The notes below the pieces were generated by a model. The model was not told where the DNA came from. It worked only from the letters and a program-made list of their open reading frames with translations, and made no database searches. The position numbers and the translations under genes were made by a program. Shown here in pieces: positions 25,479 through 59,243 of a stretch of 64,000 nucleotides of DNA; the first letter of the stretch is position 1, and each line of letters starts with the position of its first letter. Where the stretch lies: positions 1 through 64,000 of IMG/VR virus record IMGVR_UViG_3300026521_000003. The stretch is one strand, 5' to 3'.

Positions 25479-25601
25479 ATGACACTATCTCACAAAAAAA
25501 TAAAATCTATTAAAAAAGTTAAATATTATGACAAAGTATATGATATAACTATGAAGTCCAACCCACATACATTTTTTGCTAATAATATTTTAGTACATAA
25601 C
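25479..25601 (+). other. Split intein C-fragment (41 aa, basic), Ser+1 at 25602
   Basis: Block F VYDI and block G LVHN followed by Ser. Confidence 0.92.
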
Positions 25602-26633
25602 AGTTGCTATTTTAGAATAATGGAGGCAGAAAATTTGGAGGAAGCTCAAAAAATTGGTGCCGATGTTGTAAAAGCATGTGATGAAGGTAGTATTCCAATG
25701 TTGGTTAAAGATATTTTTAATGGTGATGATGTCATGAGATCCGATTTTGAAGCTATTGCCCGTTCAACATTATCATATGGTAAAAAGAAACAATATGCAT
25801 TTCTAAAAGGTTGGGAAGATGGTGAAGTACTTCCAAAGCCAAAATTAGGTATTACCGGTCTATCTATTAAAAGATCTGATTCACCCAAACAACTATCTAT
25901 GGAAATGAAACCGTTCTTTACTGAAATTATGAAAGGTTTAAAACATGAGCAAATCAAAGAAGCTATGGATAAAATTGAGTCGGATTATGATGATCTAAGC
26001 TTATATGATTTATCTGCAAAACGTTCAGCGAATAATTTAGGTAAATATTTAAAAGCATTCAATTATGAAATTGAATATAAATCTAGACCTTATAATATAG
26101 AAAAAATTGATGAATTTTTAAAAGAAGAGTACCCTGATATAAAAATTAAAATAAATGATAAAATATATTTTGATTTTATGAGAGAAGGTAGAGGTCGTTA
26201 TTCATTAGAAGATGGTGAATTAATAAAAGATGTTAATGGCGAAATTTATATTGAAGCAAAGGTAAAAATGGTTGTACCATTTCATATAAAGGCGTCTATT
26301 TTATATAACTATCTATTAGATGAATATAATTTATCATCCGAGTTTAATCAAATATTAAACGGTGAAAAAATTAAACTTTTTTATATTAAACCTACAAAAA
26401 TAAATATAAAATATACAAATAGTGATGGTGAAGTATTTGATATGATACAAGAATTTGATTGTATTGCATTCCCTTCTAGTTCTAAACACATACCATCATT
26501 TATTAATGATTTTACCCCAGATAAAAAGAGAATGCTAGAAACTTATTTCTTTGGTAAAATGGAAACTATTTTTGATGTTATTGGATTTAGCAAAGAAAAA
26601 CTTGAAAATATAGCTATGGATTCACTATTCTAA
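25479..26633 (+). CDS. polB: Split-intein C-half fused to family B DNA polymerase C-terminal part (palm/thumb)
   Basis: VYDITM...TFFANNILVHN|SCYF, then KKKQYA, GLSIKRSDSP, PFHIKASILYN, GEKIK. Confidence 0.92.
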   Translation: MTLSHKKIKSIKKVKYYDKVYDITMKSNPHTFFANNILVHNSCYFRIMEAENLEEAQKIGADVVKACDEGSIPMLVKDIFNGDDVMRSDFEAIARSTLSYGKKKQYAFLKGWEDGEVLPKPKLGITGLSIKRSDSPKQLSMEMKPFFTEIMKGLKHEQIKEAMDKIESDYDDLSLYDLSAKRSANNLGKYLKAFNYEIEYKSRPYNIEKIDEFLKEEYPDIKIKINDKIYFDFMREGRGRYSLEDGELIKDVNGEIYIEAKVKMVVPFHIKASILYNYLLDEYNLSSEFNQILNGEKIKLFYIKPTKINIKYTNSDGEVFDMIQEFDCIAFPSSSKHIPSFINDFTPDKKRMLETYFFGKMETIFDVIGFSKEKLENIAMDSLF

Positions 26634-28194: not shown

Positions 28195-28221
28195 TTAAGT
28201 TTTTTGCACTATAACCGATAT
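28195..28221 (+). promoter_or_regulatory. sigma28 (FliA)-type promoter for the flagellin gene
   Basis: TTAAGTTT-N11-ACCGATAT versus consensus TAAAGTTT-N11-GCCGATAA, 100 bp upstream of the flagellin ATG. Confidence 0.75.
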
Positions 28222-28321: not shown

Positions 28322-29125
28322 ATGTTTAATTTAGGACAAGCTCAATCAATTTTAGGGATTAATAATTCAAATGATCAAATTTATAGATTAAATGAGCAGT
28401 TACAAACAGGTAAAAGAATTAACAGAGCGGCAGATGATGCTTCTGGTATGGCTATCGCAAACCAACTTAAATCACAAGCTAATGGTTTGGGTCAAGCCAT
28501 TAGAAATTTAAATGAGGCAATTTCATTAACAAACATAGCTGATGGAGCTTTAGAAGAATATACTAAAGTCCTTATGGAAATTAGAGATAAAGCGTCTCAA
28601 GCAATTTCTGATTCAAATTCAACCGAATCTAGAACAGCTTTACAAAATGATATTAATGAAATGATTAAATCTGCGGAAGCTATAGCAACTGATACGTCTT
28701 ATAATGGTATTAAATTATTAGATGGTACTTTTACAAATAAAGTATTCCAAACTGGGGCATATAGTGGACAAACAACATCTATATCAATTTCTAGTGTTAA
28801 AACAGCTGATTTGGGTATTGATGCGTTGACAGTTGATACTTCTACAAACGCTGCAACAGCATTGGATAATATCGATGCTGCTCTTAAATCTCTTGACGGT
28901 ATTAGAAGTGGTATCGGTTCTGTTACACAAGGTCTTGAATCTAAAGTTAGAAATATGCAAGTAACACAACAAAACGTCTTATCTGCAGAATCTAATATTA
29001 GAGATGTAGATGAAGCACAAGCAAAAGCTGAATTAGATAACTGGACTGTTAGAAATCAAGCTGCAATGTTCGCATTTAATATGGCAGCTCAACAACAACA
29101 AAGTATTCTAAGATTATTCCAATAG
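28322..29125 (+). CDS. Minimal flagellin (D0/D1 only), phage-encoded
   Basis: TGKRINRAADDASGMAIA, YNGIKLLDG, FQTGA, AESNIRDVD, C-terminal QSILRLFQ; 267 aa. Confidence 0.95.
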   Translation: MFNLGQAQSILGINNSNDQIYRLNEQLQTGKRINRAADDASGMAIANQLKSQANGLGQAIRNLNEAISLTNIADGALEEYTKVLMEIRDKASQAISDSNSTESRTALQNDINEMIKSAEAIATDTSYNGIKLLDGTFTNKVFQTGAYSGQTTSISISSVKTADLGIDALTVDTSTNAATALDNIDAALKSLDGIRSGIGSVTQGLESKVRNMQVTQQNVLSAESNIRDVDEAQAKAELDNWTVRNQAAMFAFNMAAQQQQSILRLFQ

Positions 29126-29182: not shown

Positions 29183-29467
29183 ATGGGTGGATATGCTAAT
29201 GACGTAAGTAGTTTTTTATCAATTTTTTATTTTCGCATGGAAGAGAAATTAAATGAATTAATAGAATTGAGTAAAGATAAATCATTTGATAGTACTAAGA
29301 AAAGTGTTGCAATTAAAGACAAATTAATCGAAGCATTAGATATGCTTACAATGAGTGCATCAGATGATAAAATAAAAGAATTTACTGATTATCTAAGTAC
29401 GAAAATTATTCTAGGTAAAGTAGAAGATTTAGAGGACGCAAAACGTGTATGTAAACTAATACGGTAA
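29183..29467 (+). CDS. Putative FliS-like flagellin chaperone (divergent)
   Basis: All-helical, 94 aa. FLSIFY..MEEKL, FTDYLSTKI and LEDAKRVCKLIR align by eye with FliS helices (L.MLY...I.FL; LYDY...L; LDEV...L..LR). Lies between flagellin and flaG. Confidence 0.45.
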   Translation: MGGYANDVSSFLSIFYFRMEEKLNELIELSKDKSFDSTKKSVAIKDKLIEALDMLTMSASDDKIKEFTDYLSTKIILGKVEDLEDAKRVCKLIR

Positions 29468-29478
29468 AGGAGATAACT

Positions 29479-29799
29479 ATGATTCAGGAATTAACAAAAT
29501 CATTATCTAATTCAATACCTTCTATAAACTATACTGAACCACAATTAAATAATATACAAGAAAAATCTTTTAATGAAATACTTGATATTGAGAAAAGTAT
29601 AAATGAAGTTAATGAGTTATTAAAAGAAAAGAATCTAAAAGTTGAGTTAAATAGAGATATTAATATGATACAGATAAAAGAATTTGATGAAACTGGTGAA
29701 ATAGTATTAAAATCTACTCCACCAGAAGAATATATAAAAAGAGTTAAATACTTTAAAGAAAATATTCTTCCTAGTTTATTATTGGATGAAAAGGTTTAA
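29479..29799 (+). CDS. flaG: FlaG family protein
   Basis: INEVNELL...D.TGEIVLKSTPPEEYIK...LLLDEKV, the characteristic FlaG C-terminus. Confidence 0.8.
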   Translation: MIQELTKSLSNSIPSINYTEPQLNNIQEKSFNEILDIEKSINEVNELLKEKNLKVELNRDINMIQIKEFDETGEIVLKSTPPEEYIKRVKYFKENILPSLLLDEKV

Positions 29800-30563
29800 C
29801 TTTTAGACTTTAATTTTTCAAAAGCTAGTTTTTCCGCTTCAACATCTATATTATTAGATAATCTCAATTCGGTTGGGAAAGTATTTTCAATATACGGTGT
29901 TAAAACTGGTGGAACAAACTCTTTCCATTCATCAGATTCATCCATAATAGCTTTTCGGATTTCTGTTCCGCTCATACAAATACTTTCTTTTAGTCTATCA
30001 ACAATATGTATTTGAATAGTATTTTCACCATATTCTTCATTTAGAGCATTAAACCAACTTGCATCATGCTTAGAACCAGCATAGTAATGATTTGGTTTTG
30101 GTAGGTTCATACCATCAATTTTACCAAATACAAAAGAAGCCCAGGCAATTTTAGAAACCGCACCAAGATCTTTAAGCTCTATAATTTTTAATTTAGATTT
30201 TTTACCTGTTACACCAAAAACTTTTTCAATCATCTCTCTACGTTGTTTCGGTGTAAATGGATTATTAATATTGCCACTTTCTTGAATTGAACCTAAACCA
30301 ATAATGACAATATCCATTTCTTTCATCATACGAGAAATCAATTCAAAGTGACCATTATGCATAGGTTGCATTCTCATTACAGCTAATCCAACGTTTGGAA
30401 GCATTTCAATGTTTGTAACCTCTAAATCATCATCTTGATAATCTTCTTTTAATATCTTGATAGCAGCTTGCTCGGAATTTGCTTTCACAGTTTCTATTTC
30501 ATCATATGTAGAATTAAATTCATCTTCATATTTAAAGCTAATAGTGTAGGTATTCATAATCAT
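29796..30563 (-). CDS. Nicotinamide-nucleotide adenylyltransferase (NadM/NMNAT-like)
   Basis: RMQPMHNGH, IGLGS, NPFT...R..MI, SGTEIRK, W..FVP. Confidence 0.85.
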   Translation of the reverse strand: MIMNTYTISFKYEDEFNSTYDEIETVKANSEQAAIKILKEDYQDDDLEVTNIEMLPNVGLAVMRMQPMHNGHFELISRMMKEMDIVIIGLGSIQESGNINNPFTPKQRREMIEKVFGVTGKKSKLKIIELKDLGAVSKIAWASFVFGKIDGMNLPKPNHYYAGSKHDASWFNALNEEYGENTIQIHIVDRLKESICMSGTEIRKAIMDESDEWKEFVPPVLTPYIENTFPTELRLSNNIDVEAEKLAFEKLKSKS

Positions 30564-31365: not shown

Positions 31366-32588
31366 TATTTTAAAACCTTTAATAATTGTTCTTTAGTATT
31401 TAATTCCGGTTTATCAACTACTATTTTCAGAAGCATATTCAAATGCATTCCAATTTCCGGTCCTTTAAAACCAAGGTTTATCATATCTACACCATTTACT
31501 TTTAGTTGAGTAACTTTATATGGTTCTTCATCAACCGTACCCACCTTATTTTTAAGGGTTTTTAGAGTGATTAAACCGGCTTTATGATTATTCTCCTTAT
31601 TAAGAGTTTTAAACGTGTTTAAAAGTCGTTCACATAACTCGAAATTACCATCTGCTAATCTAAGCAGTGCTTTGACCGTTGCTTGATCTGAAAAATCTCT
31701 CCCCTCAAATCCATCTTGAAATGTAATGAAAAGTGTGTATAACGCTTTATATTCAGAACTCAATTTAAGTGCTTGAATAGACCCTTTCATTTCAAGTAAA
31801 AGTGGTAAGTAATCAAATGTCTTAAATATATCTACGAGTACCATTTTATGAACTTCTTTATCTTTAATAAATCTATGGAATATCCTCATATCATGTAGAG
31901 TATCAATAACAAAGTTTAAAGAATAAGAATCCTTTTTAAGAATTTTGAACATTGAGTTTAGCTCCTGATAAAGCCGTTCTACTGAAACAATAGAGTTATC
32001 ATACGTATAAATAGCTGCATCTAATTGATCTCTTGTTGTAGTAAAACCAAGACTATCAAATCGTGAGAGAAATCTCACAAATCGAATTGAACGAAGATTA
32101 TCTTCTTTAATCCTTTCAGTTGCGTCCCCAACAAATCTGATAATTCTATCATCAGAGTCTTGAATGCCATTAGTAGGATCTTTAAGTTCATTTGTTATAG
32201 GATTATACCCAACTGCATTGATAGTGAAATCTCTACGTTTTGCGTCTTCTTCAAAATTATCAGTAAAAGCAATGGTAGCATTTCTACCATCACAAGATAC
32301 ATCATATCGATACCGTGTTACCTCATATAGTTCTTTACCGATTTTAATAGATACAGTTCCATGCATTTCGCCAGTTGGGATGACAGTTTTAAATAATTTA
32401 TTAGTTATTTCTATTGGACAATTTGTTGCAAAATCAATATCTTTTGGACTAATACCAAGATATAAATCTCTAACAGGTCCACCAACTATAAGACATTCAT
32501 AGCCTGCATCCATAAAAGTTTTAGTAATAAAAAGTGTATCTGATTTAAAAGGCTCTGGAAGTTGATCAAAATATCGTTTAAAATTCAT
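31365..32588 (-). CDS. cca: tRNA nucleotidyltransferase (CCA-adding/poly(A) polymerase family)
   Basis: VGGPVRD...DIDFAT, EDAKRRDFTINA, EDNLRSIRFVRF. Confidence 0.9.
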   Translation of the reverse strand: MNFKRYFDQLPEPFKSDTLFITKTFMDAGYECLIVGGPVRDLYLGISPKDIDFATNCPIEITNKLFKTVIPTGEMHGTVSIKIGKELYEVTRYRYDVSCDGRNATIAFTDNFEEDAKRRDFTINAVGYNPITNELKDPTNGIQDSDDRIIRFVGDATERIKEDNLRSIRFVRFLSRFDSLGFTTTRDQLDAAIYTYDNSIVSVERLYQELNSMFKILKKDSYSLNFVIDTLHDMRIFHRFIKDKEVHKMVLVDIFKTFDYLPLLLEMKGSIQALKLSSEYKALYTLFITFQDGFEGRDFSDQATVKALLRLADGNFELCERLLNTFKTLNKENNHKAGLITLKTLKNKVGTVDEEPYKVTQLKVNGVDMINLGFKGPEIGMHLNMLLKIVVDKPELNTKEQLLKVLK

Positions 32589-32703
32589 TATCTTCCTTTA
32601 ATATATCAATTAATATATTATATTGATTCTATACTTAAAACTACTTAAAAAATTGATATTGGGGCATAAATAATTATATAGTTTAAAAATATAGGATTTA
32701 CAA

Positions 32704-33593
32704 ATGAATTTTAAAAAATTTAGAACACAATTTTTTGATACTTTTAACTTTGAAATTGATGGAAGATTACATTATGTATATAGAATTACAGAAATCGATA
32801 CAAATATGTCATATATTGGATCTAGAACATGTAATAGGTCTATCCACGATGCATATACTACATGCACCAATGATTTAAAATCTTATGGTACATCATCATA
32901 TAGAAAAGAATTTATAAAAGCAAACTTAGATAAATTTAAATTCAAGATATTACGAATTTTTGATAATTCGGTTGACAAAATATTATTTGAATCATTTATA
33001 CATCAGAAATTTGACGTTAAACATAATAATAAATTTTGGAATAAATCAAATCACACACCTAATGGTTGTGATACTACTGGAAGACAATTTACTCATAGTG
33101 AAGACCATATTAAAAAGAGAACTGAATCGAGATCAAAAACGATGTTGGAAGTTGGTGAAGATGGATTAAATAGGTATCAGAGAGCAAGTATAAAAGCAAA
33201 TAAAACAAAATTAAAGAAAGATAAGAATGGGTTAAGTCAATATCAGAAATTAGCTAAGAAAGCTTGGACGACAAAAAAGAAAAAGGATTTAAATTTACTT
33301 CAAAAAATAATCCACGTTTAAATACAATAATAATTATGAATGATAATGATGAAATTATTGAGATTATTGAAAGCTCATTTACTACTTTCTGCAAAGAACA
33401 TAAATACCCTATGAATGCGTTTAGGAAATCATATATTGCTAAAGGCAAAAAAATATATATTGATTTAGATAATGGTAATTTAAAGAAAATGAAAGATACT
33501 TTTGAGTATAATACATTTAAAGGGTGGTACGCTATAAAATATATAGATCTTTCCGATGAATTAATTAAAAAAGTAAAGGAGTTTAAAAGGTGA
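32704..33593 (+). CDS. GIY-YIG (Seg-like) homing endonuclease in two overlapping frames (32704-33321, 33264-33593)
   Basis: YVYRIT...SYIGSR, Y.TSS, E..., FWNK. The frames join at A AAA AAG (33273-33279). Confidence 0.75.
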
Positions 33594-33964
33594 AATTTTT
33601 AGTAGTAGATGATTCATCAACAATGAGACGAATTATAAAGAATACAATTATAAGATTGGGGTATAAAAAAGAAAATTTATTTGAGGCAGAAGATGGCGAA
33701 GTAGCATTAAATTTATTTAGAGAAAAAGGGAATGATTTTTTTGGGATAATTTTAACAGATATAAACATGCCGAATAAAAATGGATATGATTTAATAAAAG
33801 AAGTAAGAAAATTGGATGAGAATATACCAATCGTAACTATCTCAACAGAGGGTGGAAAATCTGAAGTTTTGAAAGCTTTAAAACTTGGTTCGACAAATTA
33901 CATCGTTAAACCGTTTACACCACAAGTACTTAAAGAAAAATTAAAAGATATACTTGGAGAATAA
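33590..33964 (+). CDS. cheY: Chemotaxis response regulator CheY
   Basis: VVDDSSTMRRIIKNT, TDINMP (phospho-Asp), TEGGK, NYIVKPFTPQVLKEKL, closely matching Campylobacterota CheY as I recall it. Confidence 0.92.
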   Translation: MKFLVVDDSSTMRRIIKNTIIRLGYKKENLFEAEDGEVALNLFREKGNDFFGIILTDINMPNKNGYDLIKEVRKLDENIPIVTISTEGGKSEVLKALKLGSTNYIVKPFTPQVLKEKLKDILGE

Positions 33965-34525
33965 TTAAATTTCTCTCAAGTATTTTTTTTCTAGTAATTT
34001 TAATAATCCAAATTCAAAACCTTGAAAATCACCAAATTCAATAAATTCATTTTCTTTTCTAATTTCATTCATTAAATTAACTTCTATTTCTAACTCTTCA
34101 TCTACACCATCTTTAATAGGCATAATCATTGTAAAAGGATTAATAGTGTTATCACGAATAAATTTTGTACATCTACTAATTTTCCAAACTGGAAAATTGT
34201 CTGATTCTTCATCGATTTCAAAATACAGATAGCTATGTTCTAAACCATCATCTTCTTCATAAAATTCATTGAATGCAACTGTAAATGGAGTATCTTCTGG
34301 GAATCCCTCCATTCTTTTCAACATATCATCTAACTCTATATTTGAATCTAATTTCCAATCACGTTTAAAATAATCAAGGGGTATTTCTTGTTCGATATTT
34401 AAACCTGCTAAACAAATGATAAATTTATCTTCAATCTTGATAGGTGATATTACATAATTAAATAATCTCTTATGTCTAAATACTTTACCTATCGCATCTT
34501 CCATCTTAAATAAGTTCGGTTCCAC
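33965..34525 (-). CDS. Hypothetical protein
   Basis: 186-aa ORF. Confidence 0.55.
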   Translation of the reverse strand: MEPNLFKMEDAIGKVFRHKRLFNYVISPIKIEDKFIICLAGLNIEQEIPLDYFKRDWKLDSNIELDDMLKRMEGFPEDTPFTVAFNEFYEEDDGLEHSYLYFEIDEESDNFPVWKISRCTKFIRDNTINPFTMIMPIKDGVDEELEIEVNLMNEIRKENEFIEFGDFQGFEFGLLKLLEKKYLREI

Positions 34526-35596: not shown

Positions 35597-36316
35597 TTAA
35601 TTTCCTCTTTGGTTATCGTATTTATAAGTTTCTTTAACTATTTTATTAATTCTTTCTTCTCTTTCTATAATTTCATTGATTTTTTCAATTCCATTTGAAA
35701 GATCAGCTCTCATTTTAGTTTCATTAGATAAAAGTTTTGACGATAATTTATCCATTTTATCTTTATATGATTTTGTGAGTTTTTTTGATTCATCACGCAA
35801 ATTCCATTCATTTGCTAAATAATATAAAACAGTTTGAGCAACAACTTTACTATCTGCTAAATCATCCTCAATATCAATTACATTCCCACGAATATTATTT
35901 CTTAATATAGATTTCGCATTTATTTTTTTAATTGTTTTATAAGCTTCTTTGTATGGTTTTACATCTTCACTTGTAAAGTTTTTTTGTGAACGGTCATCTG
36001 CATCATCAGGTGATACTATTGGAGTACCGTCTTCATTTACTTGTCCAGGATTATTTTCAATACGCAATTTATCCCCAGTCCCACCAATTTCATAAGCAGG
36101 TGCATTATATGCTCCTTCTTCTCTTGGTCCATTTATAGCCTCTATAAAATTATCATCAACTGGTTGTATATCAAATTCCTGTACTGATGAAATCATATCA
36201 TCTGGAAGTTCTACAACATTCCATCCAGATATATCTCCACCAAGTGCAATATCATCACCTTGCGGAGTAGTTCCACCTATCGTTTCAATATCATTTGTTT
36301 TAAATATTCCTACCAT
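35597..36316 (-). CDS. RBP partner / putative tail-fibre assembly protein 1
   Basis: Shares the D.EDDL.D.K motif with the other partner genes. Confidence 0.55.
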   Translation of the reverse strand: MVGIFKTNDIETIGGTTPQGDDIALGGDISGWNVVELPDDMISSVQEFDIQPVDDNFIEAINGPREEGAYNAPAYEIGGTGDKLRIENNPGQVNEDGTPIVSPDDADDRSQKNFTSEDVKPYKEAYKTIKKINAKSILRNNIRGNVIDIEDDLADSKVVAQTVLYYLANEWNLRDESKKLTKSYKDKMDKLSSKLLSNETKMRADLSNGIEKINEIIEREERINKIVKETYKYDNQRGN

Positions 36317-36325
36317 TATTTCCTC

Positions 36326-37945
36326 CTAGTTACCTGAATTAGCATCAAAATGATGTAAATGATACGACATATTACCAAAATAAGATGCATTTTGAGGTGT
36401 AGATGTGTTATATTTTCTAATTTGTCTCCAACCACACCAACCATATCCCCATCCACCAGCAACAGTTATAGACGTTCCATTTCCTGATGAAGCCGAATGT
36501 GAAAAATAATTTCCTATATTCCCAAAATATGATGAATTACTAGGACTTGCAATAGTAATAACTTCAATTGACCCTTTTGGATTCCACCATCCACCAAAGA
36601 TAAAACCTTTGATACCATCAGTATTACCAACATTACACCATCTGTGCCATCTTAATCCACCAAAATAAGTTCCATTTGAAGGTGTCGATATAGTGATATA
36701 GTCCATATCTTTTGATACACCCCACCACCACCAATGTTGTCTACCACCGGCATTTACACCTTTAGTACCATCAGTAATATGTGTTTGTGACCATTTTCTA
36801 GCTCTATACGCCGTACCAAAATTCTTTGAATTTGAAGGAGTAGTAATTGTTACATATTCAATATCTGATCTAGCTGACCACCAACTATTCCATCCTCCCG
36901 AAAATACACCTCTTACACCATCAGAAACACCTTGTGCACCTACAGCTCTCCAAGTAGCATTTCCAAAATATTGTCCATTACCTGGGGTAGCAAATGTAAC
37001 ATATTCATAAGTAGAAGACCATTGATGACCCGGCCAACCACCAGTATGCCATAAACCTCTATTTCCACCAGTTACACCAATCGGCGAAAGAGTCATTTGT
37101 CTTGGAGCTCCAAAAAATTTAGCATTCATAGGAGTACTTATCTGCACATAAGTATATTCATTAGGACCTTGACCACATTTCCACCCTCTAGACATAACCA
37201 TTCTATCACCTTGGAAACCTTTAACAATACGTCCTAATTTTACAGCATTATTAACATCATATACTAATTGTCCAAATTTTGCATTTGAACTATCAAATTT
37301 ACCAATACTACGCTTAACAACAGCAGTTCCCGTAGATTTATTCAATATGATAACACCTGTTGGTATTTTTGAAACATCATCCTCATTAGAATTAACTGTA
37401 TAGATAAATGAATCTTTAGTAATATGATATTGCCCTCTATCACCAAGATAAATAGATCGATCTCTAATATAAAGGGTTTTAAATCTTAATGAAAACGAAC
37501 CAAGGTCAAACATTTCATTTCTTGATGGAGTGATATTACCAGAAGTTGAAAATTTTTCTTCAACTGTTAATGCGCCACTAATTGTACCACCAGATTTATC
37601 AAATTTATCATCTAAATTTACATATCCTAGTACCCAATCTTTGATTTCTTGAATACTTTTCCCACCTATTTTACTAACATTAAAACCCCAATCAGTACCA
37701 TTAAATAACTTTAAAGTATTTGTTGATGTATCAAACCACATTTGACCAGGTAATGGATTTTCAGGTTCATCTTCACTTGCTAAATTTTCAAGTATTTTAA
37801 TAAAATTCTGGTTTAAATCTTCAATATATGATTCCGCACCCCTACCTATTAATGCAGTTGATACGACATCTTTTAAGATTTCTTTTGAACTAATATCAGC
37901 TATTACTTCATTTTGAGTATTCTTAACTGTAATTACGGTTGTCAT
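36326..37945 (-). CDS. Receptor-binding/tail fibre protein 1 (repeat propeller-like C-terminus)
   Basis: Shared N-terminal LIG...NF.K.LEN.A...P.GQ.W adaptor; repeats of YVTI.TP.N...FG. Confidence 0.7.
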   Translation of the reverse strand: MTTVITVKNTQNEVIADISSKEILKDVVSTALIGRGAESYIEDLNQNFIKILENLASEDEPENPLPGQMWFDTSTNTLKLFNGTDWGFNVSKIGGKSIQEIKDWVLGYVNLDDKFDKSGGTISGALTVEEKFSTSGNITPSRNEMFDLGSFSLRFKTLYIRDRSIYLGDRGQYHITKDSFIYTVNSNEDDVSKIPTGVIILNKSTGTAVVKRSIGKFDSSNAKFGQLVYDVNNAVKLGRIVKGFQGDRMVMSRGWKCGQGPNEYTYVQISTPMNAKFFGAPRQMTLSPIGVTGGNRGLWHTGGWPGHQWSSTYEYVTFATPGNGQYFGNATWRAVGAQGVSDGVRGVFSGGWNSWWSARSDIEYVTITTPSNSKNFGTAYRARKWSQTHITDGTKGVNAGGRQHWWWWGVSKDMDYITISTPSNGTYFGGLRWHRWCNVGNTDGIKGFIFGGWWNPKGSIEVITIASPSNSSYFGNIGNYFSHSASSGNGTSITVAGGWGYGWCGWRQIRKYNTSTPQNASYFGNMSYHLHHFDANSGN

Positions 37946-37960
37946 CTTTTCTCCTCTCCC

Positions 37961-38566
37961 TTATAGTTTCTTAGTTAAATAATAGTTATCTACTATTTTA
38001 GCTATTTCTACTTCTAAGTCTACAATTTCTTCTATTTTTTCTAAATCATTTTCAATAGTTGATAACGAATTTATACTACCTGAAATAGCTTCTTGAATTG
38101 AAGGAAAAATATCTTTGAATTTACTTTTAGATTTTTCATTCTCATCTTTATCATTCCAATCATCAACCACAAAAACCATTAAAGATTGAACTAATTTTTT
38201 AAGATCCACTAAATCATCTTCAACATCCTTCATTTCTCGTACTTTTGCACGAGTTACAAGTTTCAATTTAATATTATTTATAAAGGTTTTGGCAACTTCC
38301 ATATCACTTTTATCTTTTTCAGATAAATTAAAATTTGTAGATTCTGGCGCACCATCATCTTCTTCTACTTGCGTTGATAATAATTTTAAACCATTTGCTA
38401 CAATAGTATCAACTACAATAAAATCAAATTCTTTATAATTATGAATTTTCTCCATTGGACAATCTGCTAAATTCCAGCCTTCATAATATGCTAACCCTAT
38501 TTCAATTCCCCGAGGGTGAACTCCACCAACTCCAGGAATAATATTTTCTTTATAAATTACATACAT
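37961..38566 (-). CDS. RBP partner / putative tail-fibre assembly protein 2
   Basis: IYKEN.IP.VGGV.P.GIEIG and KDVEDDLVDLK. Confidence 0.55.
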   Translation of the reverse strand: MYVIYKENIIPGVGGVHPRGIEIGLAYYEGWNLADCPMEKIHNYKEFDFIVVDTIVANGLKLLSTQVEEDDGAPESTNFNLSEKDKSDMEVAKTFINNIKLKLVTRAKVREMKDVEDDLVDLKKLVQSLMVFVVDDWNDKDENEKSKSKFKDIFPSIQEAISGSINSLSTIENDLEKIEEIVDLEVEIAKIVDNYYLTKKL

Positions 38567-38577
38567 CTTATATCTCC

Positions 38578-40650
38578 TTAATTACCTGAAAATGCTGCTG
38601 GGTATCTTACCCCGATTGTAGCATTACCAAATTTTGTAGCAGTACCACCATTAGCATATGAAATACTATCTAATGTTCTAGAATAACTACTACCACCTGC
38701 TGCCACCATTATAGAATCATTTGAAATTGGCGTTGTTGAATGTCTAGAATATGTTAAGTTACCAAATTGACTAGAATTACTAGGTGTTGCTAATGTTAAT
38801 TTTTCTATACTATTCAAGTTACTGCCATTATAATGTCCACCTGCCCATAGACCATGAATACCATTAGAAGATGCTCCAGTCCATCCTCTACTTTGTTGCA
38901 TTTTACCAAAAATAATTGCATTTGATGGAGTTGATAAACTTACATATCTAAATTCTTGATTCGACCAACCATTAACTCCTCTATCAAAAATTGCTTTTGT
39001 ACCATCAGATACAGCCGCATTCCAATATGATGATGTTCCTAAATTTCCGTATTGTACAGCATTCATTGGTGTTGCAAATAGTACATAATTAGAAATCGTT
39101 TGATTATATCGACCACCAAATATAACAGCTCTATTACCATCTGATGCAGCTTCAGCTCTCCAACCACCATAAAATCTTCCAAAATTCACAGCATTCATTG
39201 GTGTAGCTATTGTAACATATTGAATACCCGTATAATTATGTTGATGGAATGATAATCCTCTAGTTGAATCTGATGCTCCTGCTGAATGACCACCAGTTCT
39301 ACAAGTACCAAAATTTACAGCATTAGCTGGTGTAGGAATATTTATTTTTTGAATAACTCCATGGTTCCATGAACCCATAAAAATACCTATATCACCTTTA
39401 AAACTATAATTATTACCACCTATTACCGAACCATATTTTGAATCTTGTGCTAAAGTTCTAAATGTACCATTTGATGTACTAGCTTTAAAATTTGATTTTT
39501 TAACTATAGCTTCCCCTGTAGCTCTATTAAGAATTAATGATCCCGCTGGAACATTAGTAACAGAATCTGTTTCTTTTTCAACAGTATAAACAAATGAATT
39601 TTTATTAAATTCTTTTCCTACACCCATGTAAATCGAAGCATTTTCTGATAAGTGTAAAGATCTATATCTTTTTGATGGTGAACCTAAATCCTGAATTTCA
39701 TTACCCGTTGGTATAATATCTTTAGCAGGGTGTAATGTATTAGATAATACTATTGATCCGTTAATTGTTCCACCCGTTTTATCGTATTTAACAGATAAAT
39801 CTACACCTGATAATATATAACTTCTAAGTGATGATAAATCTTTTCCATCTAATGTTTCTGCCGATAAACTCCATGTATCTCCATCCCAAACTAATAAATT
39901 TGAATTTGGCATAGGATTACCATTTGAGTCCGTTAAAGATGTCAATGCCGTATGAGGACCCATACCTTCAGATGGAACTAATGATTCAAATGCTACTTGT
40001 GCATATGCGTGTTTCTTTTCATCATAACCTTTTAAATCTTCTGATATAATACCAAATTTACCAGTACCAATCGCAGCATATGGATAACGCCAGCTTCTTT
40101 TTACTTTATGCCATGCTTTAGATTTTAATAAATCCATTCGTTTATTCAAATCATTATTAGTACCAATTGCATCATATGACACCATTATAAACATATCATT
40201 TTTAGCAATAGTTCCTAATTTTCTAGCTAACTGTGTTCTAGCCGCATTTGAACCATATGTATCATAATAACCAATAGATTTAACTTTTGTTCTAAAATTA
40301 GAATCAAAAATAACTAATGCTATACCTCTTCGGTTTTTAATTCTAATACCGGTATTACCTGCAAATTGTATATATCTACTAGCATTATAATTTAACCCCG
40401 TACCTCGTACATTAATGATATTAGAACCTTTTTTAGAATACCATAATTGACCAACAACAGGATTAGCAGGGGCTTTTTTTGAGGCAAAATTTTCTAATAA
40501 AGCATAGAAGTTTTCATTGACTTCTTTTAAATATGTTTCTGTACCCTTCCCAAAAAGATTTATAGGTGTTGTTGAACTATCAATCGTTCCATCAGTTATA
40601 GATGTAACAACCTCATTCGATGTATTTCGTATTTCAATATTTCCAGCCAT
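38578..40650 (-). CDS. Receptor-binding/tail fibre protein 2 with ILEI/GG-lectin-like insert
   Basis: Same adaptor and repeats; insert RGIALVIFD...YDTYG...MVSYDA...WRYPYAAIG. Confidence 0.7.
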   Translation of the reverse strand: MAGNIEIRNTSNEVVTSITDGTIDSSTTPINLFGKGTETYLKEVNENFYALLENFASKKAPANPVVGQLWYSKKGSNIINVRGTGLNYNASRYIQFAGNTGIRIKNRRGIALVIFDSNFRTKVKSIGYYDTYGSNAARTQLARKLGTIAKNDMFIMVSYDAIGTNNDLNKRMDLLKSKAWHKVKRSWRYPYAAIGTGKFGIISEDLKGYDEKKHAYAQVAFESLVPSEGMGPHTALTSLTDSNGNPMPNSNLLVWDGDTWSLSAETLDGKDLSSLRSYILSGVDLSVKYDKTGGTINGSIVLSNTLHPAKDIIPTGNEIQDLGSPSKRYRSLHLSENASIYMGVGKEFNKNSFVYTVEKETDSVTNVPAGSLILNRATGEAIVKKSNFKASTSNGTFRTLAQDSKYGSVIGGNNYSFKGDIGIFMGSWNHGVIQKINIPTPANAVNFGTCRTGGHSAGASDSTRGLSFHQHNYTGIQYVTIATPMNAVNFGRFYGGWRAEAASDGNRAVIFGGRYNQTISNYVLFATPMNAVQYGNLGTSSYWNAAVSDGTKAIFDRGVNGWSNQEFRYVSLSTPSNAIIFGKMQQSRGWTGASSNGIHGLWAGGHYNGSNLNSIEKLTLATPSNSSQFGNLTYSRHSTTPISNDSIMVAAGGSSYSRTLDSISYANGGTATKFGNATIGVRYPAAFSGN

Positions 40651-40663
40651 TTTTTACTCCTTC

Positions 40664-41311
40664 CTAACCTATCTTTTTCAACATTTCAGTATAATTAGAT
40701 TTAACAATCCTTGAAATAAATGTTTCATCTTTTATAATTTTTGGTATTTTATTTAAAAATTTACTATCATTAATTCTAATATCTTTTTCATTTATTGTTG
40801 ATGTTAAACCATTCATTAGATCTTTCATAGGGAAATTAGCTTTTTCAGATTCTGATTTCATTTCATAATCTTCTAAAATATATCTTAATAAAAATTCTAT
40901 TAACAGTTTAGTATCAGATAAATCATCTTCAAAATCTTTAAATTGTCTTATCTTAGATCGTGTTATAAATTTTAATTCTAATTTATCTATATATTCTTTA
41001 GATAAAGAGATCAATTTTAATTCTTCTTCACTTGAACCAAATTGTTCATTTTCTAAAGCTATTTCGCTTGGCATAACATCCATATCTTCCTGTATAGATT
41101 GATATGTTTCATTATCTAACATCATACCTACCGCTATCGATTTAGGAATAGGATACAGTTTAAATTCTGAATATTTATCGAATTCTTCTTCAACCATAGC
41201 ACACAATTTCCACCCATTATATTCAGCCATACCTATTTCTATACCATCGGGATTAACTCCACCAACTAAAGGTATAACATTTTCTTTATATATTGCATAT
41301 ATTATATTCAT
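40664..41311 (-). CDS. RBP partner / putative tail-fibre assembly protein 3
   Basis: Paralogue of 37961-38566 (KDFEDDLSDTK). Confidence 0.55.
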   Translation of the reverse strand: MNIIYAIYKENVIPLVGGVNPDGIEIGMAEYNGWKLCAMVEEEFDKYSEFKLYPIPKSIAVGMMLDNETYQSIQEDMDVMPSEIALENEQFGSSEEELKLISLSKEYIDKLELKFITRSKIRQFKDFEDDLSDTKLLIEFLLRYILEDYEMKSESEKANFPMKDLMNGLTSTINEKDIRINDSKFLNKIPKIIKDETFISRIVKSNYTEMLKKIG

Positions 41312-41324
41312 AATTTTTATCTCC

Positions 41325-42965
41325 TTAATTCCCTGAAGCTCCAGAAGGTCTAGACCCTCTTCGCATCGTCATATTTCCAAAATTAATAGAATTCATAGGT
41401 GTTTGGATAGTTACTGATTCCATAGTATTATCCCACCATGTTGCTGCAGACACACCAGTTATACCGTTTGATAAACCTATTCCCGCACTATTTCTACTTC
41501 TTCTAGTTCTTCCAAAATCAATACCGTTACTAGGAGTAGCTATGGTAATATATTCAATATAATTATTAGTCCAATTACCATCCCAGCCACCAAAGTATAA
41601 TCCTTTGATAGTATCCGTTAGTGCTGATCCAGCTGGTCCTCTATGTCTTCTTGTACTTCCAAAATAAATTGAATTCTTTAGAGTTTGAATAGTAATGTAT
41701 TCTAATCTACTAGACCATCCTCTTCTTGAATAACCACCGAATACACCTCTTGTTCCAGAAGATACAGCTGATCCCCAATATCCTTGTTTGATAGTTCCAA
41801 ATTTAGATGAATTACCAGGTGTTTCTATCGTAATATAAGTTGCAATATAATGGTGTCCTCTAGGACCTGGAGTTCGAGCATTATAACCTGGACCAATAAT
41901 ACCTTTTGTTCCATCTGATACTGATGATGAACCATAATTTTCATATCCGATAGTTCCAAAATATGTAGCGTTACTAGGAGAAGCAAAAGTAACATAATCC
42001 ATTTTTCCATTATGTGAACCATGTGAACCATTCCAACCACCTTGGAAAACTCCTCTGGTTCCACTAGACATACCCGCACCCATATGACTTCTACCATACG
42101 ATAGATTTCCGAATGTTTGACCATTACCAGGTGTTGAAATTGTTATTTTTTCAATTGACGCATTTCTATGACCACCAACAGAACCCCAGCCTCCGGCTAT
42201 TAAACCAATATCGCCTAAGAATTTAAATTTATTCCCACCTATAACAGCTGAATTTTGTTTATCATCAGCTAGTTTTCTAAATGTTTTATTATTAGCACCA
42301 AAAATACCAGTTGATTTCTTAATAATGGCTTCACCTGTTTCCTGATGTAAGATAATTGCACCTACTGGGAATTTCGATACATCAGAATTATCATTTTCAA
42401 CAACATATACAAAGTTATTAGATTTAAATTTTAATCCCTTAGATTCATCACCTAATGTAATACCATCTTCTTTTAAATAAATATTTCTAAATCTATTATT
42501 TTTTCCACCGAGATTTGATTGTTCCGTTACAACAGGCAAAATTGATTTTCGGATTTGTACTGCTCCAGAAATATCTACTTCACCAGTAATAGTACCACCA
42601 GTTTTAGATAATTTTCCAGTTGTATCCAAACCAGATAAAACATACTCACGGACACCATCCAATGTCTTACCACCAATTTTATCAGCATTTGAAAGCCACT
42701 CAGAATTAGTTCTATAATTAATTCTATTATTAGCTTTATCATACCATATTTGTCCCTCAACAACCCCATCATTAGTAGATGCTTGTGGTGGTGTACTCTC
42801 ACCTGCAAAATTTTCTAATAATTTAACAAAGTTGTCATTTATATCACCAATAAAATTCTCAACATTTTCACCAATTAATGCGGTCTCAAATGTTGAATTT
42901 ATAGTATCTTCGGCAATAGTGGCAATTTCTTGATTTTCAGTATTATATACTTTAATTTCAGCCAT
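41325..42965 (-). CDS. Receptor-binding/tail fibre protein 3
   Basis: Same adaptor, same repeats and same C-terminal SGN. Confidence 0.7.
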   Translation of the reverse strand: MAEIKVYNTENQEIATIAEDTINSTFETALIGENVENFIGDINDNFVKLLENFAGESTPPQASTNDGVVEGQIWYDKANNRINYRTNSEWLSNADKIGGKTLDGVREYVLSGLDTTGKLSKTGGTITGEVDISGAVQIRKSILPVVTEQSNLGGKNNRFRNIYLKEDGITLGDESKGLKFKSNNFVYVVENDNSDVSKFPVGAIILHQETGEAIIKKSTGIFGANNKTFRKLADDKQNSAVIGGNKFKFLGDIGLIAGGWGSVGGHRNASIEKITISTPGNGQTFGNLSYGRSHMGAGMSSGTRGVFQGGWNGSHGSHNGKMDYVTFASPSNATYFGTIGYENYGSSSVSDGTKGIIGPGYNARTPGPRGHHYIATYITIETPGNSSKFGTIKQGYWGSAVSSGTRGVFGGYSRRGWSSRLEYITIQTLKNSIYFGSTRRHRGPAGSALTDTIKGLYFGGWDGNWTNNYIEYITIATPSNGIDFGRTRRSRNSAGIGLSNGITGVSAATWWDNTMESVTIQTPMNSINFGNMTMRRGSRPSGASGN

Positions 42966-57100: not shown

Positions 57101-57413
57101 ATTCTAAGAAACCTGAACCAGTTGTAATTTGTTTTCTTGCTGTTGAAGCAGAATCAATAGCATTTCTTCCTGGTAAATATATAGCATTTGCATTTGTTAA
57201 TTCCCAATCTGCTCCTTCTCCAGTACCATTCCAAATTTTCATTAAACTTGTTGTTGTATCGAACCATCTATACCCTACTGTTGGTGCTGCTGGTGCATCT
57301 GGACCAACAGTATATTGTAAAGACGTTTCAATTTGTTGCTTGATTGCAACGTCTTTCTCATCAACTTTACTCATAATTTCATTGTGTAGTTGATTTAATC
57401 GTATCAAAGACAT
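54129..57413 (-). CDS. Tail fibre protein (1094 aa), paralogue of the 2376-aa protein
   Basis: Shared N-terminus (IRL.QLH.E) and internal blocks. Confidence 0.7.
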   Translation of the reverse strand: MSLIRLNQLHNEIMSKVDEKDVAIKQQIETSLQYTVGPDAPAAPTVGYRWFDTTTSLMKIWNGTGEGADWELTNANAIYLPGRNAIDSASTARKQITTGSGFLEFGGKINSPKTINKSMLANDGIPRIAGIVGEGEDAIKKFWFENFFLLNANGYTEDTLDPSTGELTEVLVDGINLTIQGTLPNSEVITDSKLMAINLPDAPNTVDELVRDELVFLEVWREDITETGFVFPYGNVQYTGENADGIATEYFTGEVGYCESFDGDSITLTEIDQNGNETTTEKPKGRGWQWTNLKAAYKNIIAANYKHNIFVDGDKLVQIRYRVRVVSFAKNPATPLTDTTVLGYTKDNDATSVIKAQGKLGTINNSDDNYKILAPFNEDNPHSLNGTYSTEYTTDLSQDGYVFALPLAAVSRRNTGVFDTIFNPNGSARFRDGLRLVADYDESDDIIGFALMDIANATLASSTTGATWEDKYEIMMNWLFDRTTILASYDNAAGFVIGGDMNSGISGRYDGLYYDEVNEVDIKDLRIDINKQLDLAYILEQEFNKFILGDQRGWQQENHLYQWEGNIAQDALVQQADGSYLMDNGEHVKGYGYVTELPIYYKLADGSEITGMDAKIATNITSGYTSSLFVRPGVEPTDTNPRPFYSNTFTRRVQVKLMPVLDTNGEEQTDIDGNLIQKIVISDGAIYIDEATEFILVSPKDRAARKSQLFADIIGDPKGNSFKFSTSMHTGNDLDADTILENGNIAFTGQNYYVYRGATKNLNDIQGTQTDNAGYFSIDETDTNTWIDITDKGGYSEGWKMYGNLGTAMVVNEEGDSMLPRDVISGIWDSNQNKQVYTNTKFFKLSKPVESIKKVIVTTDKKAGKKAFLTQITASNNGKSIIDQVDETPATFGFENSVYLTNNNTIAINWETFTDDAIVEIYYEVSSNPTSITVSTKVDMLGDIWLGNALKQDLGCKAISNLMDKVSIHDAPLGSKGAAKRIPLSTYLVNKGEDGAVLNDEWSILTHAEVDLAGNGPAIKILPYITSVRGEMFLKLLYKELDMDIDINGVAYKLDNNQFVVVDGETTDDNGGTGNMVKVGHRKIKLPYYFGDAV

Positions 57414-59237: not shown

Positions 59238-59243
59238 AACATA

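Follow-up and report, generated by a model that had tools for sequence, protein, structure and literature searches.

The cheY locus of a T4-like jumbo phage

The DNA analysed here (the window) is a stretch of 64,000 nucleotides, positions 1 to 64,000 of the 289,880-bp IMG/VR virus record IMGVR_UViG_3300026521_000003. The record corresponds to a T4-like jumbo phage of hydrothermal-vent Campylobacterota, with a T4-type gp23 scoring 266 bits, and its host is assigned only to phylum, although co-occurring host cheY fragments give a weak lead to Sulfurimonas. Within the window, a gene for a stand-alone receiver domain closely related to the chemotaxis regulator CheY is found downstream of a flagellin module, between a CCA-adding/poly(A) polymerase-family gene and a tail-fibre-like block (Table 1).

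Table 1. Features of the cheY neighbourhood (positions in the window)
Coordinates	Strand	Feature	Remarks
28196..28221	+	Sigma-28 (FliA)-type promoter-like element upstream of flagellin	TAAG, 15 nt, CCGATAT; function inferred
28322..29125	+	Compact phage flagellin	267 aa; Flagellin_N and Flagellin_C only; 4.5 kb upstream of cheY
29183..29467	+	Conserved ORF without family match	94 aa; between flagellin and FlaG
29479..29799	+	FlaG-like protein	106 aa
31365..32588	-	CCA-adding/poly(A) polymerase-family gene	Conserved left flank of the cheY slot
32600..32671	+	Conserved cheY leader/promoter region, now upstream of the endonuclease	ATATATTATATTG at 32613-32625; CTTAAAA at 32634-32640; followed by CATAAATA at 32664-32671, which resembles a T4 late promoter; promoter function inferred
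32650..33920	+	Imported recombinant patch	Endonuclease plus the first ~330 nt of cheY; boundaries approximate
32704..33321	+	N-terminal fragment of a GIY-YIG/SegE-like homing endonuclease	205 aa
33264..33593	+	C-terminal fragment of the same endonuclease, in another frame	109 aa; frames switch in an A-run near 33270-33290; TGA stop overlaps the cheY GTG
33576..33581	+	AAGGAG ribosome-binding site	8 nt upstream of the GTG start
33590..33964	+	Phage cheY, allele group A	124 aa; GTG start, TAA stop
33965..34525	-	Conserved gene convergent with cheY, first of a tail-fibre-like block	186 aa; its stop abuts the cheY stop, with no terminator between them

An earlier note, made from the sequence alone, had described this gene as a phage-encoded CheY with its phosphorylation-site residues intact, a start codon overlapping the stop of a GIY-YIG ORF (GTGA), no CheA or CheW in the window and a flagellin module 4 kb away, and our analysis confirms that observation. 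The only nuance concerns the upstream ORF, which is not a whole GIY-YIG gene but the C-terminal fragment of a frameshifted one. The absence of CheA and CheW holds not only for the window but also for the whole record, where there is no CheW, Hpt, histidine kinase, FlgM or FliS, and where the single HATPase_c hit is a gyrase-B-like subunit.

The flagellin module is real, with Flagellin_N scores of 123-126 bits and Flagellin_C scores of 57-60 bits for the flagellin, and a Pfam FlaG score of 25.0 bits (cut-off 23.8) for the FlaG-like ORF. More than 50 related clusters of 267-269-aa flagellins were found, many of them on 150-500-kb contigs. In the related contigs L091 to L094, FlaG is also called at the same position, and an ORF of 88-97 aa sits in the place of the 94-aa ORF, for which an Atlas search was uninformative. 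The polymerase-family gene (Pfam PolyA_pol, 106 bits) keeps its position in the relatives L004-L007, L091, L093 and L094. The promoter-like element upstream of flagellin, TAA(A/G)G...C(C/A)GATAT, is conserved in five divergent phages while its flanks diverge, and the case for it rests on this conservation, since a strict TAAA-N14-17-CGATAT scan of the window was at chance level and missed the element, whose -35 reads TAAG in this phage. A generic sigma-70 promoter and terminator scan was also at or below chance, and no terminator was found. As for cheY itself, the conserved leader was recognised by alignment with the regions upstream of cheY in five relatives, and TATAAATA is enriched upstream of genes, including the gp23 capsid gene.

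A receiver domain of the CheY type

The protein scores 86 bits (E 2.5e-24) with Pfam Response_reg, which covers residues 4-118, and it has no output domain. HMMER alignments to the E. coli and H. pylori CheY proteins place the key residues (E. coli numbering in brackets) as D7/D8 (D12/D13), D57 (D57), S85-T86 (T87-A88), Y104 (Y106) and K107-P108-F109 (K109-P110-F111), whereas N59 and E87 match N59 and E89 of E. coli. All five active-site residues, the Tyr switch and the Lys-Pro-Phe motif are in place, and they are conserved across 19 phage sequences. The AF2 model, with a pLDDT of 96.9, predicts a (beta-alpha)5 fold of five strand-helix units, for which Foldseek gave a TM-score of 0.93 to H. 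pylori CheY1 and of 0.85-0.89 to E. coli CheY. The best solved relatives are all CheY, led by H. pylori CheY1 (127.6 bits; PDB 3GWG/3H1E).

Among NCBIfam models the best match is also CheY (NF007901), with a score of 95 bits against an equivalog cut-off of 189 bits, a cut-off tuned to enteric proteins that named Campylobacterota CheYs do not reach either (129-131 bits), although the phage allele still scores about 35 bits below its hosts. Identity to Campylobacterota CheY, including proteins named CheY in Hydrogenimonas and Lebetimonas, is 56-63%. In a Helicobacter genome the best match is CheY at 63% identity, followed by the CheA receiver and CheV at 33-34%, and no other receiver exceeded 41% in the three Campylobacterota genomes compared. 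Grouping with non-chemotaxis receivers, which the earlier note had given as a result that would refute its reading, is excluded, since in a maximum-likelihood tree the protein nests inside Campylobacterota CheY.

A phage-borne lineage with two groups of alleles

In the same tree, 13 group-A sequences form a clade (support 100/96), and a second set of phage sequences forms another (group B, 97/91). Both groups, together with one uncharacterised metagenomic sequence (P0035) and a long-branch Sulfurospirillum paralog (L046), make up a group (97/91) nested in Campylobacterota CheY. The Sulfurospirillum paralog sits in an ordinary housekeeping context and adds nothing to this picture. The lineage occurs in at least four phage contexts, among them relatives syntenic with the window and a contig with T4 portal and gp23 genes. 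Values of dN/dS of 0.13-0.20 for the closest pairs indicate purifying selection, and the composition of the gene is fully ameliorated, with 28.0% GC in cheY against 27.4% in the genome.

Three independent relatives keep the order flagellin, FlaG, CCA/poly(A) polymerase, cheY, which supports the link with the flagellin module proposed in the earlier note. This link is not universal, since cheY is missing from some flagellin-bearing phages, including a complete 155-kb one without any receiver domain. Some relatives add FlgM or a hybrid histidine kinase, the latter in one relative. On the other hand, no conserved neighbour travels with cheY across the different phage contexts, and the 186-aa downstream gene has no homolog next to cheY in the other contexts.

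Outside this family, a nucleotide search of the 8-kb neighbourhood against GenBank phages found no match, and a protein search of the same collection gave only distant receivers of at most 43.5% identity, many in records that look like host DNA. Peptide-pattern and degenerate-DNA scans of IMG/VR for this CheY found nothing apart from the window's own record.

Group A departs from cellular CheY at the residue next to the phospho-Asp. The family signature T-D-W-N-M-P is broken by an Ile at position 58 in the window and in all 13 group-A sequences, whereas Trp is present in 107/107 other hits and in 80/80 genome loci from many phyla, although this residue is a signature and not a catalytic requirement. 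Group A also changes the host-invariant L66 at the active-site rim and four host-invariant positions of the alpha4/beta5 docking face (T95K, A99L, V101S/A and N102T/S; L66 becomes Tyr). Moreover, it has Ser-Thr instead of Thr-Thr at the end of beta4 and a two-residue insertion after beta2 that is also seen in Arcobacteraceae CheY. In contrast, alpha1 (STMRRIIKNT) and alpha5 (KPFTPQVLKEKL) are identical to the host CheY consensus and as conserved in the phages as in the hosts, and group-B alleles in the same genomic slot are host-like across the whole docking face.

A metatranscriptome holds contigs identical to the window over flagellin, FlaG and the 3' end of cheY. This RNA evidence is weak, since the contigs are unstranded, the one over cheY spans only 33797-34036 (the last 168 nt of the gene together with the convergent gene) and DNA carry-over is not excluded. 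In the window, the GTG start behind a frameshifted upstream ORF may also lower expression.

An imported patch with a split endonuclease

The two ORFs preceding cheY together cover one intact 247-aa homolog present in L094, with the N-terminal fragment aligning to its residues 5-103 and the C-terminal fragment to residues 193-246. Contigs from three DNA runs show no insertion or deletion at the frameshift. The N-terminal fragment scores 22.3 bits with Pfam SegE_GIY-YIG, below the cut-off of 25, and matches phrog_314 'homing endonuclease' with an E of 1.5e-12. The endonuclease is absent at this site in the relatives L091, L093, L094 and L007. Identity to the close relative L091, measured per 60 nt, is 0.77-0.97 from 31530 to 32609 and 0.93-1.0 from about 33920 through 34187, but falls to 0.4-0.8 inside cheY, whereas identity to L007 shows the reverse pattern. 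The endonuclease and most of cheY thus form an imported patch in an otherwise 83-99% identical backbone, and the GIY-YIG gene marks a recombinational allele swap rather than a functional operon partner. Endonuclease genes sit directly beside or near cheY in three other contexts as well: HNH_3 in the contig L008, HNH in L010 and a TnsA-like gene in L096.

Comparison with related systems

The closest known protein is the Campylobacterota CheY itself, also a stand-alone receiver of ~120-125 aa, with the same active-site quintet, Tyr switch and KPF motif, identical alpha1 and alpha5 helices and Asn/Glu at the D+2/T+2 positions, but here it is encoded by a virus without CheA or CheW. Among phages, the 'CheY-like' auxiliary genes of Alteromonas phages V22, A5 and P24 (PMC7289586, PMC10579305) are also single receiver-domain genes, without a tested function, carried by tailed phages next to tail-fibre/host-recognition modules and shared between unrelated phages by recombination. 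They are annotated only at the superfamily level (IPR001789), are about 147-149 aa long and have no reported link to flagellin, whereas the protein described here is a clear CheY ortholog of its host phylum. Enterobacter prophage FR-phi brings its own flagellin and changes the flagellar apparatus and motility of the host (PMC13418256), but this temperate siphovirus represses host fliC with an RNA-guided factor (TldR) and has no CheY. At the level of annotation, FlaA, FlaG, FliI, CheR, CheY and MCP genes have been listed in Nitrosospira phage genomes (bioRxiv 10.64898/2026.05.02.722434), which indicates that phages can carry flagellin, FlaG and CheY together, in that case for a different host phylum and without phylogeny, residue, synteny or selection analyses. 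With regard to the endonuclease, free-standing GIY-YIG (Seg-type) genes of T4-like phages are similarly inserted between conserved genes, present in one phage and absent in its close relatives, with a tract of flanking sequence replaced. The present copy is split by a frameshift, and its co-converted flank is a host-derived signalling gene.

Possible roles of the phage CheY

The earlier note had inferred that the phage may bias motor switching or act as a CheA phosphate sink, steering or immobilising the infected cell, an interpretation that our data support only in part. These effects remain plausible and are still the leading ideas, but sequence cannot decide between an agonist and a sink. 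The note missed that the gene is an old, selected, phage-resident lineage, that its allele departs from all cellular CheYs beside the phospho-Asp, and that the GIY-YIG gene records an allele swap.

In our view, and with somewhat more confidence than not, the gene is a functional phage-borne CheY that an ancestor of these T4-like jumbo phages acquired from a Campylobacterota host, and that has since been maintained and exchanged among phages. The protein would be made inside the infected cell from its own leader, in the window phage co-transcribed behind the inserted endonuclease gene and with its own ribosome-binding site. As the phage has no kinase, Asp57 would take its phosphoryl group from the host CheA, or from acetyl phosphate. 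Through its unchanged alpha1 and alpha5 surfaces, the protein would engage the partners of the host CheY, CheA and the FliM/FliY switch, most likely competing in the CheA-CheY-FliM pathway and putting flagellar switching under phage influence alongside a putatively sigma-28-driven flagellin and FlaG. What our analysis establishes is the orthology, the intact active site, the predicted fold, purifying selection, the conserved synteny with flagellin and FlaG and the absence of a phage kinase, whereas phosphotransfer from CheA, binding to the switch, expression during infection and any effect on swimming are inferred, in the absence of any biochemical or phenotypic evidence. The effect could be more reversals, sustained taxis during a long infection, or loss of taxis. 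The group-A changes suggest altered kinetics or partner preference compared with the host protein, and binding to CheA, FliM or the phosphatase may be changed or lost.

A less likely alternative is that of a phosphate sink, in which the phage CheY would take phosphoryl groups from the host CheA without acting productively on the motor, draining host CheY-P so that the infected cell swims smoothly and becomes blind to gradients, as sink CheYs of alpha-proteobacteria and the receiver domain of Campylobacterota CheA do. The intact phospho-acceptor site, the unchanged alpha1 (the main kinase-pairing helix) and the lack of a phage kinase fit this view, and the changes on the docking face and the rim could weaken FliM binding or speed turnover. 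However, Tyr104 and the solvent-exposed alpha5 residues Q112, K115, E116 and K117 are as strictly conserved as in motor-binding host CheYs, which a pure sink would not obviously need, and the host-like docking face of group B also argues against it. It seems more doubtful still that the receiver has been re-used for a target other than the motor, such as flagellin/FlaG assembly, a tail-fibre-related step or host signalling. The lost Trp and other lineage-specific changes, the position at the edge of a tail-fibre-like block, as in Alteromonas phages V22/A5 (PMC10579305), and the hybrid histidine kinase of one relative would be in agreement with it, but the lack of a conserved neighbour, the host-like alpha1 and alpha5 helices and the grouping with CheY orthologs rather than other single-domain receivers are not. 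A defence or anti-defence role was also considered, but no PADLOC model matches the protein. Finally, a passenger without function, host DNA spreading only because it lies next to homing endonucleases, is very unlikely. Part of the spread of cheY may indeed be hitch-hiking, given its four endonuclease-associated contexts and the arrival of the window allele together with the endonuclease, but the reading frames are intact, dN/dS is low, all catalytic residues are conserved in 19 phage sequences spanning down to about 55-60% identity, and the gene is kept in its slot in relatives that lack any endonuclease there.

A more speculative possibility, which we consider unlikely but not excluded, is that group-A CheY is a re-tuned 'rogue' regulator that still accepts phosphate from the host CheA, but whose altered rim (Trp to Ile, L66Y) and alpha4/beta5 face let it escape the host phosphatase or hold the switch differently, so that the phage locks the flagellar behaviour of the infected cell. 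Together with FlaG and a phage flagellin wired to host sigma-28, this could keep the virocell at a favourable redox interface, or block superinfection by flagellum-dependent phages. On this reading, homing endonucleases trade alternative cheY alleles between co-infecting phages as host-adaptation cassettes.

Phage auxiliary genes are mostly known for metabolism, and control of host behaviour by a virus-encoded chemotaxis regulator has not been shown experimentally. In the papers we searched, phage 'CheY-like' genes appear only as annotations. The locus offers a concrete and tractable case, with a true CheY ortholog that selection has kept in a family of vent jumbo phages, a genomic link to flagellin and FlaG, and two natural allele classes, one host-like and one lacking the universal Trp, which act as a built-in structure-function experiment. 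With its well-conserved CheY beside its own flagellin genes, this phage family probably interferes with how infected cells steer. If the protein works on the motor, viral infection would change how key sulfur-oxidising Campylobacterota position themselves in chemical gradients, and it would also show homing endonucleases shuffling behavioural genes between phages.

Identity and predicted structure of the phage CheY

The open frame of 124 codons that encodes the phage receiver starts with a GTG, which is preceded by an AAGGAG sequence 8 nt upstream and overlaps the TGA of the upstream ORF, giving a GTGA overlap. A Pfam search detects a receiver domain over residues 4-118 (86 bits, E 2.5e-24), whereas the best NCBIfam model is the CheY equivalog at 95 bits. 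This last score is below the curated cut-off of 189 bits, but named Campylobacterota CheYs also reach only 129-131 bits, so the cut-off does not discriminate in this case. HMMER alignments to solved structures allowed us to place the key residues (E. coli numbering in brackets) at D7/D8 (D12/D13), D57 (D57), N59 (N59), S85-T86 (T87-A88), E87 (E89), Y104 (Y106) and K107-P108-F109 (K109-P110-F111). Of the 58 PDB sequences matched at E <= 1e-15, 56 are CheY chains, led by H. pylori CheY1 at 127.6 bits, whereas the other two are a de novo design and a CheY fusion. Moreover, an AlphaFold2 model built on 42 aligned sequences has a mean pLDDT of 96.9 and five strand-helix units, for which Foldseek returns H. 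pylori CheY1 at a TM of 0.93 and an rmsd of 1.0-1.2 A. The observation of the earlier note, which had described a stand-alone receiver closely resembling Campylobacterota CheY with its phosphorylation-site residues intact, is thus confirmed in every detail.

Coordinates of the features considered in this part (window positions unless another contig or record is named)
Feature	Location	Strand	Remarks
Phage cheY	33590-33964	+	124 codons
Sigma-28 (FliA)-type element (inferred)	28196-28221		TAAG-N15-CCGATAT, upstream of flagellin
Compact flagellin	28322-29125		267 aa; only the N- and C-terminal helical regions, no middle domain
Conserved ORF	29183-29467		94 aa
FlaG-like ORF	29479-29799
GIY-YIG / Seg-like homing endonuclease, one frame	32704-33321
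Same endonuclease, other frame	33264-33593		Its TGA overlaps the cheY GTG
Overlap of the two endonuclease frames	33264-33321		Frames switch in an A-run near 33270-33290
CATAAATA	32664-32671		Before the endonuclease
Tail-fibre-like block	35597-42965	-	Three tandem pairs of a tail-fibre-like protein (539, 690 and 546 aa, with a shared N-terminal motif and Gly/Asn-rich repeats) and a 201-239-aa protein; the small proteins are paralogs at 26-29% identity
Large ORF	45461-52591	-	2376 aa; matches only phrog_14489, of no known function
ORF	54129-57413		1094 aa; matches only phrog_14489; preceded by the late-promoter octamer
ORF with weak match to an intein splicing domain	25479-26633	+	384 aa
Homing-endonuclease-like ORF (573 aa) directly beside a topoisomerase II large-subunit fragment	57516-60476	-
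gp23 gene (crude call)	96345-97568 of the whole record	-	266 bits; preceded by the late-promoter octamer
FlgM anti-sigma-28 factor	L092:4323-4535	-	33 bits; near the flagellin of this relative
Hybrid histidine kinase	L093:2557-5055	+	832 aa; PAS-HisKA-HATPase_c-receiver
Acb1 anti-CBASS gene	L010:5180-5698	+	87.5 bits; two genes downstream of cheY
Split poly(A)-polymerase-family gene	L004:2-2080 and L005:1090-3531		Two ORFs (311 and 198 aa in L005)

Genomic context and the flagellin module

The 289,880-bp IMG/VR virus record, of which the window is the first 64 kb, about 87% complete by CheckV and with 27.4% G+C, encodes a T4-type major capsid protein (gp23). The T4 late-promoter octamer TATAAATA lies 8-60 nt upstream of 38 of 295 crude gene calls, against 3.4 expected from its genome-wide density, and these include the gp23 gene and several large, putatively structural genes in the window (such as 41325-42965 and 54129-57413). 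The receiver is the only one in the record, where we found no CheW, Hpt, FlgM or FliS, and the single HATPase_c match is a gyrase-B-like subunit. The phage therefore brings a CheY without any kinase. The intein-like and homing-endonuclease-like ORFs listed in the table suggest further mobile elements within replication genes.

The flagellin module is real, and comprises the flagellin, a conserved ORF and a FlaG-like ORF. The element preceding the flagellin is conserved as TAA(A/G)G...C(C/A)GATAT in five divergent phages, including the relatives L091-L094, while the surrounding non-coding DNA diverges. It matches the sigma-28 (FliA) promoter type of flagellar class-3 genes, an identification that is inferred, and which suggests that the phage flagellin is wired into the host flagellar regulon. 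Compact flagellins of 267-269 aa (clusters P0122-P0177) form a large family with more than 50 clusters at 55-91% identity, many of them on contigs of 150-500 kb, including a 496-kb contig in an NCBI assembly and a complete 155-kb phage with terminal repeats.

Relatives, phylogeny and selection

A large protein search returned the window's own cluster, twelve closer clusters at 59-85% identity, and then hundreds of Campylobacterota CheYs at about 56-62%, some of them named CheY in Hydrogenimonas and Lebetimonas and others, from Arcobacteraceae and Campylobacterales, labelled only 'response regulator'. The closer clusters lie on phage-like contigs. Four of these (L004-L007) share the gene order of the window, with a CCA/poly(A) polymerase on the minus strand, cheY on the plus strand and then 184/326/242/539-aa genes on the minus strand, whereas L008 and L010 are other phage contexts with DUF5906, endonuclease VII, HNH, Acb1 and an actin-like protein. 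Relatives of the flagellin led us to three more syntenic jumbo-phage contigs (L091, L093 and L094), each with the order DnaJ, flagellin, a ~95-aa ORF, FlaG, cytidylyltransferase, poly(A) polymerase and cheY. A further CheY cluster (P0054) sits beside T4 portal, prohead protease and gp23 genes.

In a maximum-likelihood tree of 94 rows, the 13 sequences of the window's type (group A) form a clade with support 100/96, and five host-like phage sequences (group B: L091, L094, P0054, P0028 and P0065) form a clade with support 97/91. Groups A and B, together with one uncharacterised metagenomic row (P0035) and one long-branch Sulfurospirillum paralog (L046), form a group with support 97/91 nested inside Campylobacterota CheY, although the L093 allele falls elsewhere in the Campylobacterota polytomy and, with only 126 columns, the deeper order is unresolved. 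In three Campylobacterota genomes the phage protein matches CheY at 56-63% identity and every other receiver, including the CheA receiver and CheV, at 41% or less. It is therefore a CheY ortholog and not a generic receiver.

Nei-Gojobori estimates obtained with our own script for the closest pairs gave dN/dS values of 0.136 (window-L007), 0.127 (L007-L004) and 0.156 (L091-L094), whereas synonymous sites approach saturation in deeper pairs. The G+C content of the gene (28.0%; GC3 17.7%) equals that of the phage, against a mean of 35.0% for 27 bacterial Campylobacterota cheY genes. The gene is an old, selected resident of phage genomes, and not a recent capture or an assembly chimera; contigs from independent DNA runs also span it without differences.

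With regard to the co-occurrence with flagellin, all three syntenic relatives that could be checked (L091, L093 and L094) carry flagellin, FlaG and cheY. However, a differently arranged relative (L092) has FlgM, flagellin and FlaG but no receiver within 10 kb, the complete 155-kb flagellin-bearing phage has no receiver domain at all, and the portions retrieved of L008, L010 and the cheY-bearing contig L096 carry cheY without flagellin. The two traits are therefore linked in the window's subfamily but separable. Relatives of this phage family carry further motility or signalling genes, such as the FlgM of L092 and the hybrid histidine kinase of L093.

Sequence changes in the two allele groups

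A column-by-column comparison of 13 group-A, 5 group-B and 61 bacterial Campylobacterota sequences showed that alpha1 (S-T-M-R-R-I-I-K-N-T) and the whole beta5-alpha5 stretch (N-Y-I-V-K-P-F-T-P-Q-V-L-K-E-K-L) are unchanged in the phages, save for the group-B changes in alpha1 described below. In E. coli CheY, these are the helix that pairs with the kinase and the face that binds FliM, the CheZ C-terminus and CheA-P2. In contrast, the Trp after the phospho-Asp becomes Ile in 13 of 13 group-A sequences, whereas Trp is present in 107 of 107 other hits and in 80 of 80 genome loci from many phyla. Five positions that are invariant in the hosts are also altered in group A (L66Y, T95K, A99L, V101S/A and N102T/S), a two-residue insertion follows beta2, as in Arcobacteraceae CheY, and part of the group has Ser-Thr instead of Thr-Thr at the end of beta4. 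Group B keeps the Trp and the host-like docking face, but changes alpha1 (R13L, S10K) and the host-invariant Trp40 of alpha2. The D+2 and T+2 positions (Asn, Glu) are those of E. coli and host CheY, and substitutions at these positions have been studied structurally for their effect on CheY, although any prediction for kinetics here would be an inference.

The homing endonuclease and the allele swap

The two ORFs preceding cheY are two frames of one GIY-YIG / Seg-like homing endonuclease, since a single 247-aa homolog in L094 aligns to both, over residues 5-103 and 193-246. Contigs from three DNA runs agree with the window, without any insertion or deletion at the A-rich run where the frames switch, and it is therefore either a decaying gene or one read through by slippage. 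The endonuclease is absent from this site in L091, L093, L094 and L007. The conserved cheY leader (ATATATTATATTG ... CTTAAAA) lies upstream of the endonuclease in the window, so the element inserted between the leader and the start codon, which is ATG in all relatives and GTG here.

L091 is the close relative of the window, with neighbouring proteins that are mostly 83-99% identical, but its CheY is only 61% identical. L007, on the other hand, is a distant relative with flanks at 55-84%, yet its CheY is 85% identical. Along the DNA, identity to L091 rises from 0.4-0.8 to 0.93-1.0 at about 33920, inside the invariant K-P-F-T-P-Q-V-L-K-E-K-L coding stretch, and identity to L007 does the opposite, whereas on the left side similarity to L091 ends at about 32650. 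So a patch comprising the endonuclease and the first ~330 nt of cheY was imported into an L091-like backbone, which is the pattern expected from endonuclease-driven co-conversion, although this mechanism is an inference. Endonuclease genes also lie beside or near cheY in L008 (HNH_3, overlapping the start), L010 (HNH) and L096 (TnsA-like), a proximity that may partly reflect chance in endonuclease-rich genomes. Moreover, the two ORFs of the split poly(A)-polymerase-family gene in L004/L005 are separated by a 243-aa ORF on the other strand that is 37% identical to the GIY-YIG fragment of the window, which looks like another endonuclease insertion in the same neighbourhood.

Expression

A biofilm metatranscriptome (run X5) holds contigs with no differences from the window over flagellin (28339-28908), FlaG and the next gene (29456-30136), parts of the poly(A)-polymerase gene, and positions 33797-34036, the last of which covers the final 168 nt of cheY and runs into the convergent gene. 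As these contigs have no strand, nothing covers the endonuclease or the 5' part of cheY, and DNA carry-over is possible, we regard them as a hint only. In L091 an exact TATAAATA lies about 27 nt before the cheY start, whereas other relatives have C/GATAAATA and the window has CATAAATA before the endonuclease, so late expression is possible but unproven. A scan found no terminator between cheY and the convergent 186-aa gene. In addition, contigs from runs X1, X3 and X5 match only the conserved 3' stretch of cheY (33899-33940) and continue into host-type sequence encoding ...ITALKAGVNN and ...LGAVMGVAE, which resembles the C-termini of Sulfurimonas CheYs (L033, L037) and offers a weak lead to the host or to an abundant co-resident.

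Comparison with other phage-encoded motility genes

In the literature searched, phage 'CheY-like' genes are reported only as annotations, either in the Alteromonas phages V22/A5/P24, where they sit in recombining host-recognition modules (PMC7289586, PMC10579305), or in Nitrosospira phages, where they are listed with FlaA and FlaG (bioRxiv 10.64898/2026.05.02.722434). Phage-encoded flagellin that remodels host flagella has been shown for the temperate Enterobacter phage FR-phi (PMC13418256). We found no report of a CheY ortholog lineage in Campylobacterota jumbo phages, or of its biochemistry, although, the collection searched being incomplete, this is absence of evidence.

A predicted role in flagellar switching

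The family assignment as CheY is sound and the phage context is solid, whereas the functional interpretation of the earlier note, that the phage may bias motor switching or drain phosphate from CheA, is only partly supported: it is reasonable, but rests on inference from sequence. Our analysis itself establishes the orthology, an intact site and predicted fold, the selection, the absence of a phage kinase and the synteny with the flagellar genes; phosphotransfer, FliM binding and any phenotype are what we infer from them.

Among the alternatives, a phosphate sink is possible but rather unlikely, and a receiver re-used for another target seems less likely still. A functionless passenger of homing endonucleases appears very improbable, since selection and the retention of the gene in endonuclease-free relatives argue strongly against it. 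The explanation that we favour, although only somewhat more likely than not, is a functional CheY that would be phosphorylated on Asp57 by the host CheA. The sign of its effect, on which sequence alone does not decide, could be more reversals, maintenance of taxis through a long jumbo-phage infection after host shut-off, or loss of taxis. In this view, the protein would engage the partners of the host CheY, so that switching of the flagellar motor would come under phage influence together with phage flagellin and FlaG.
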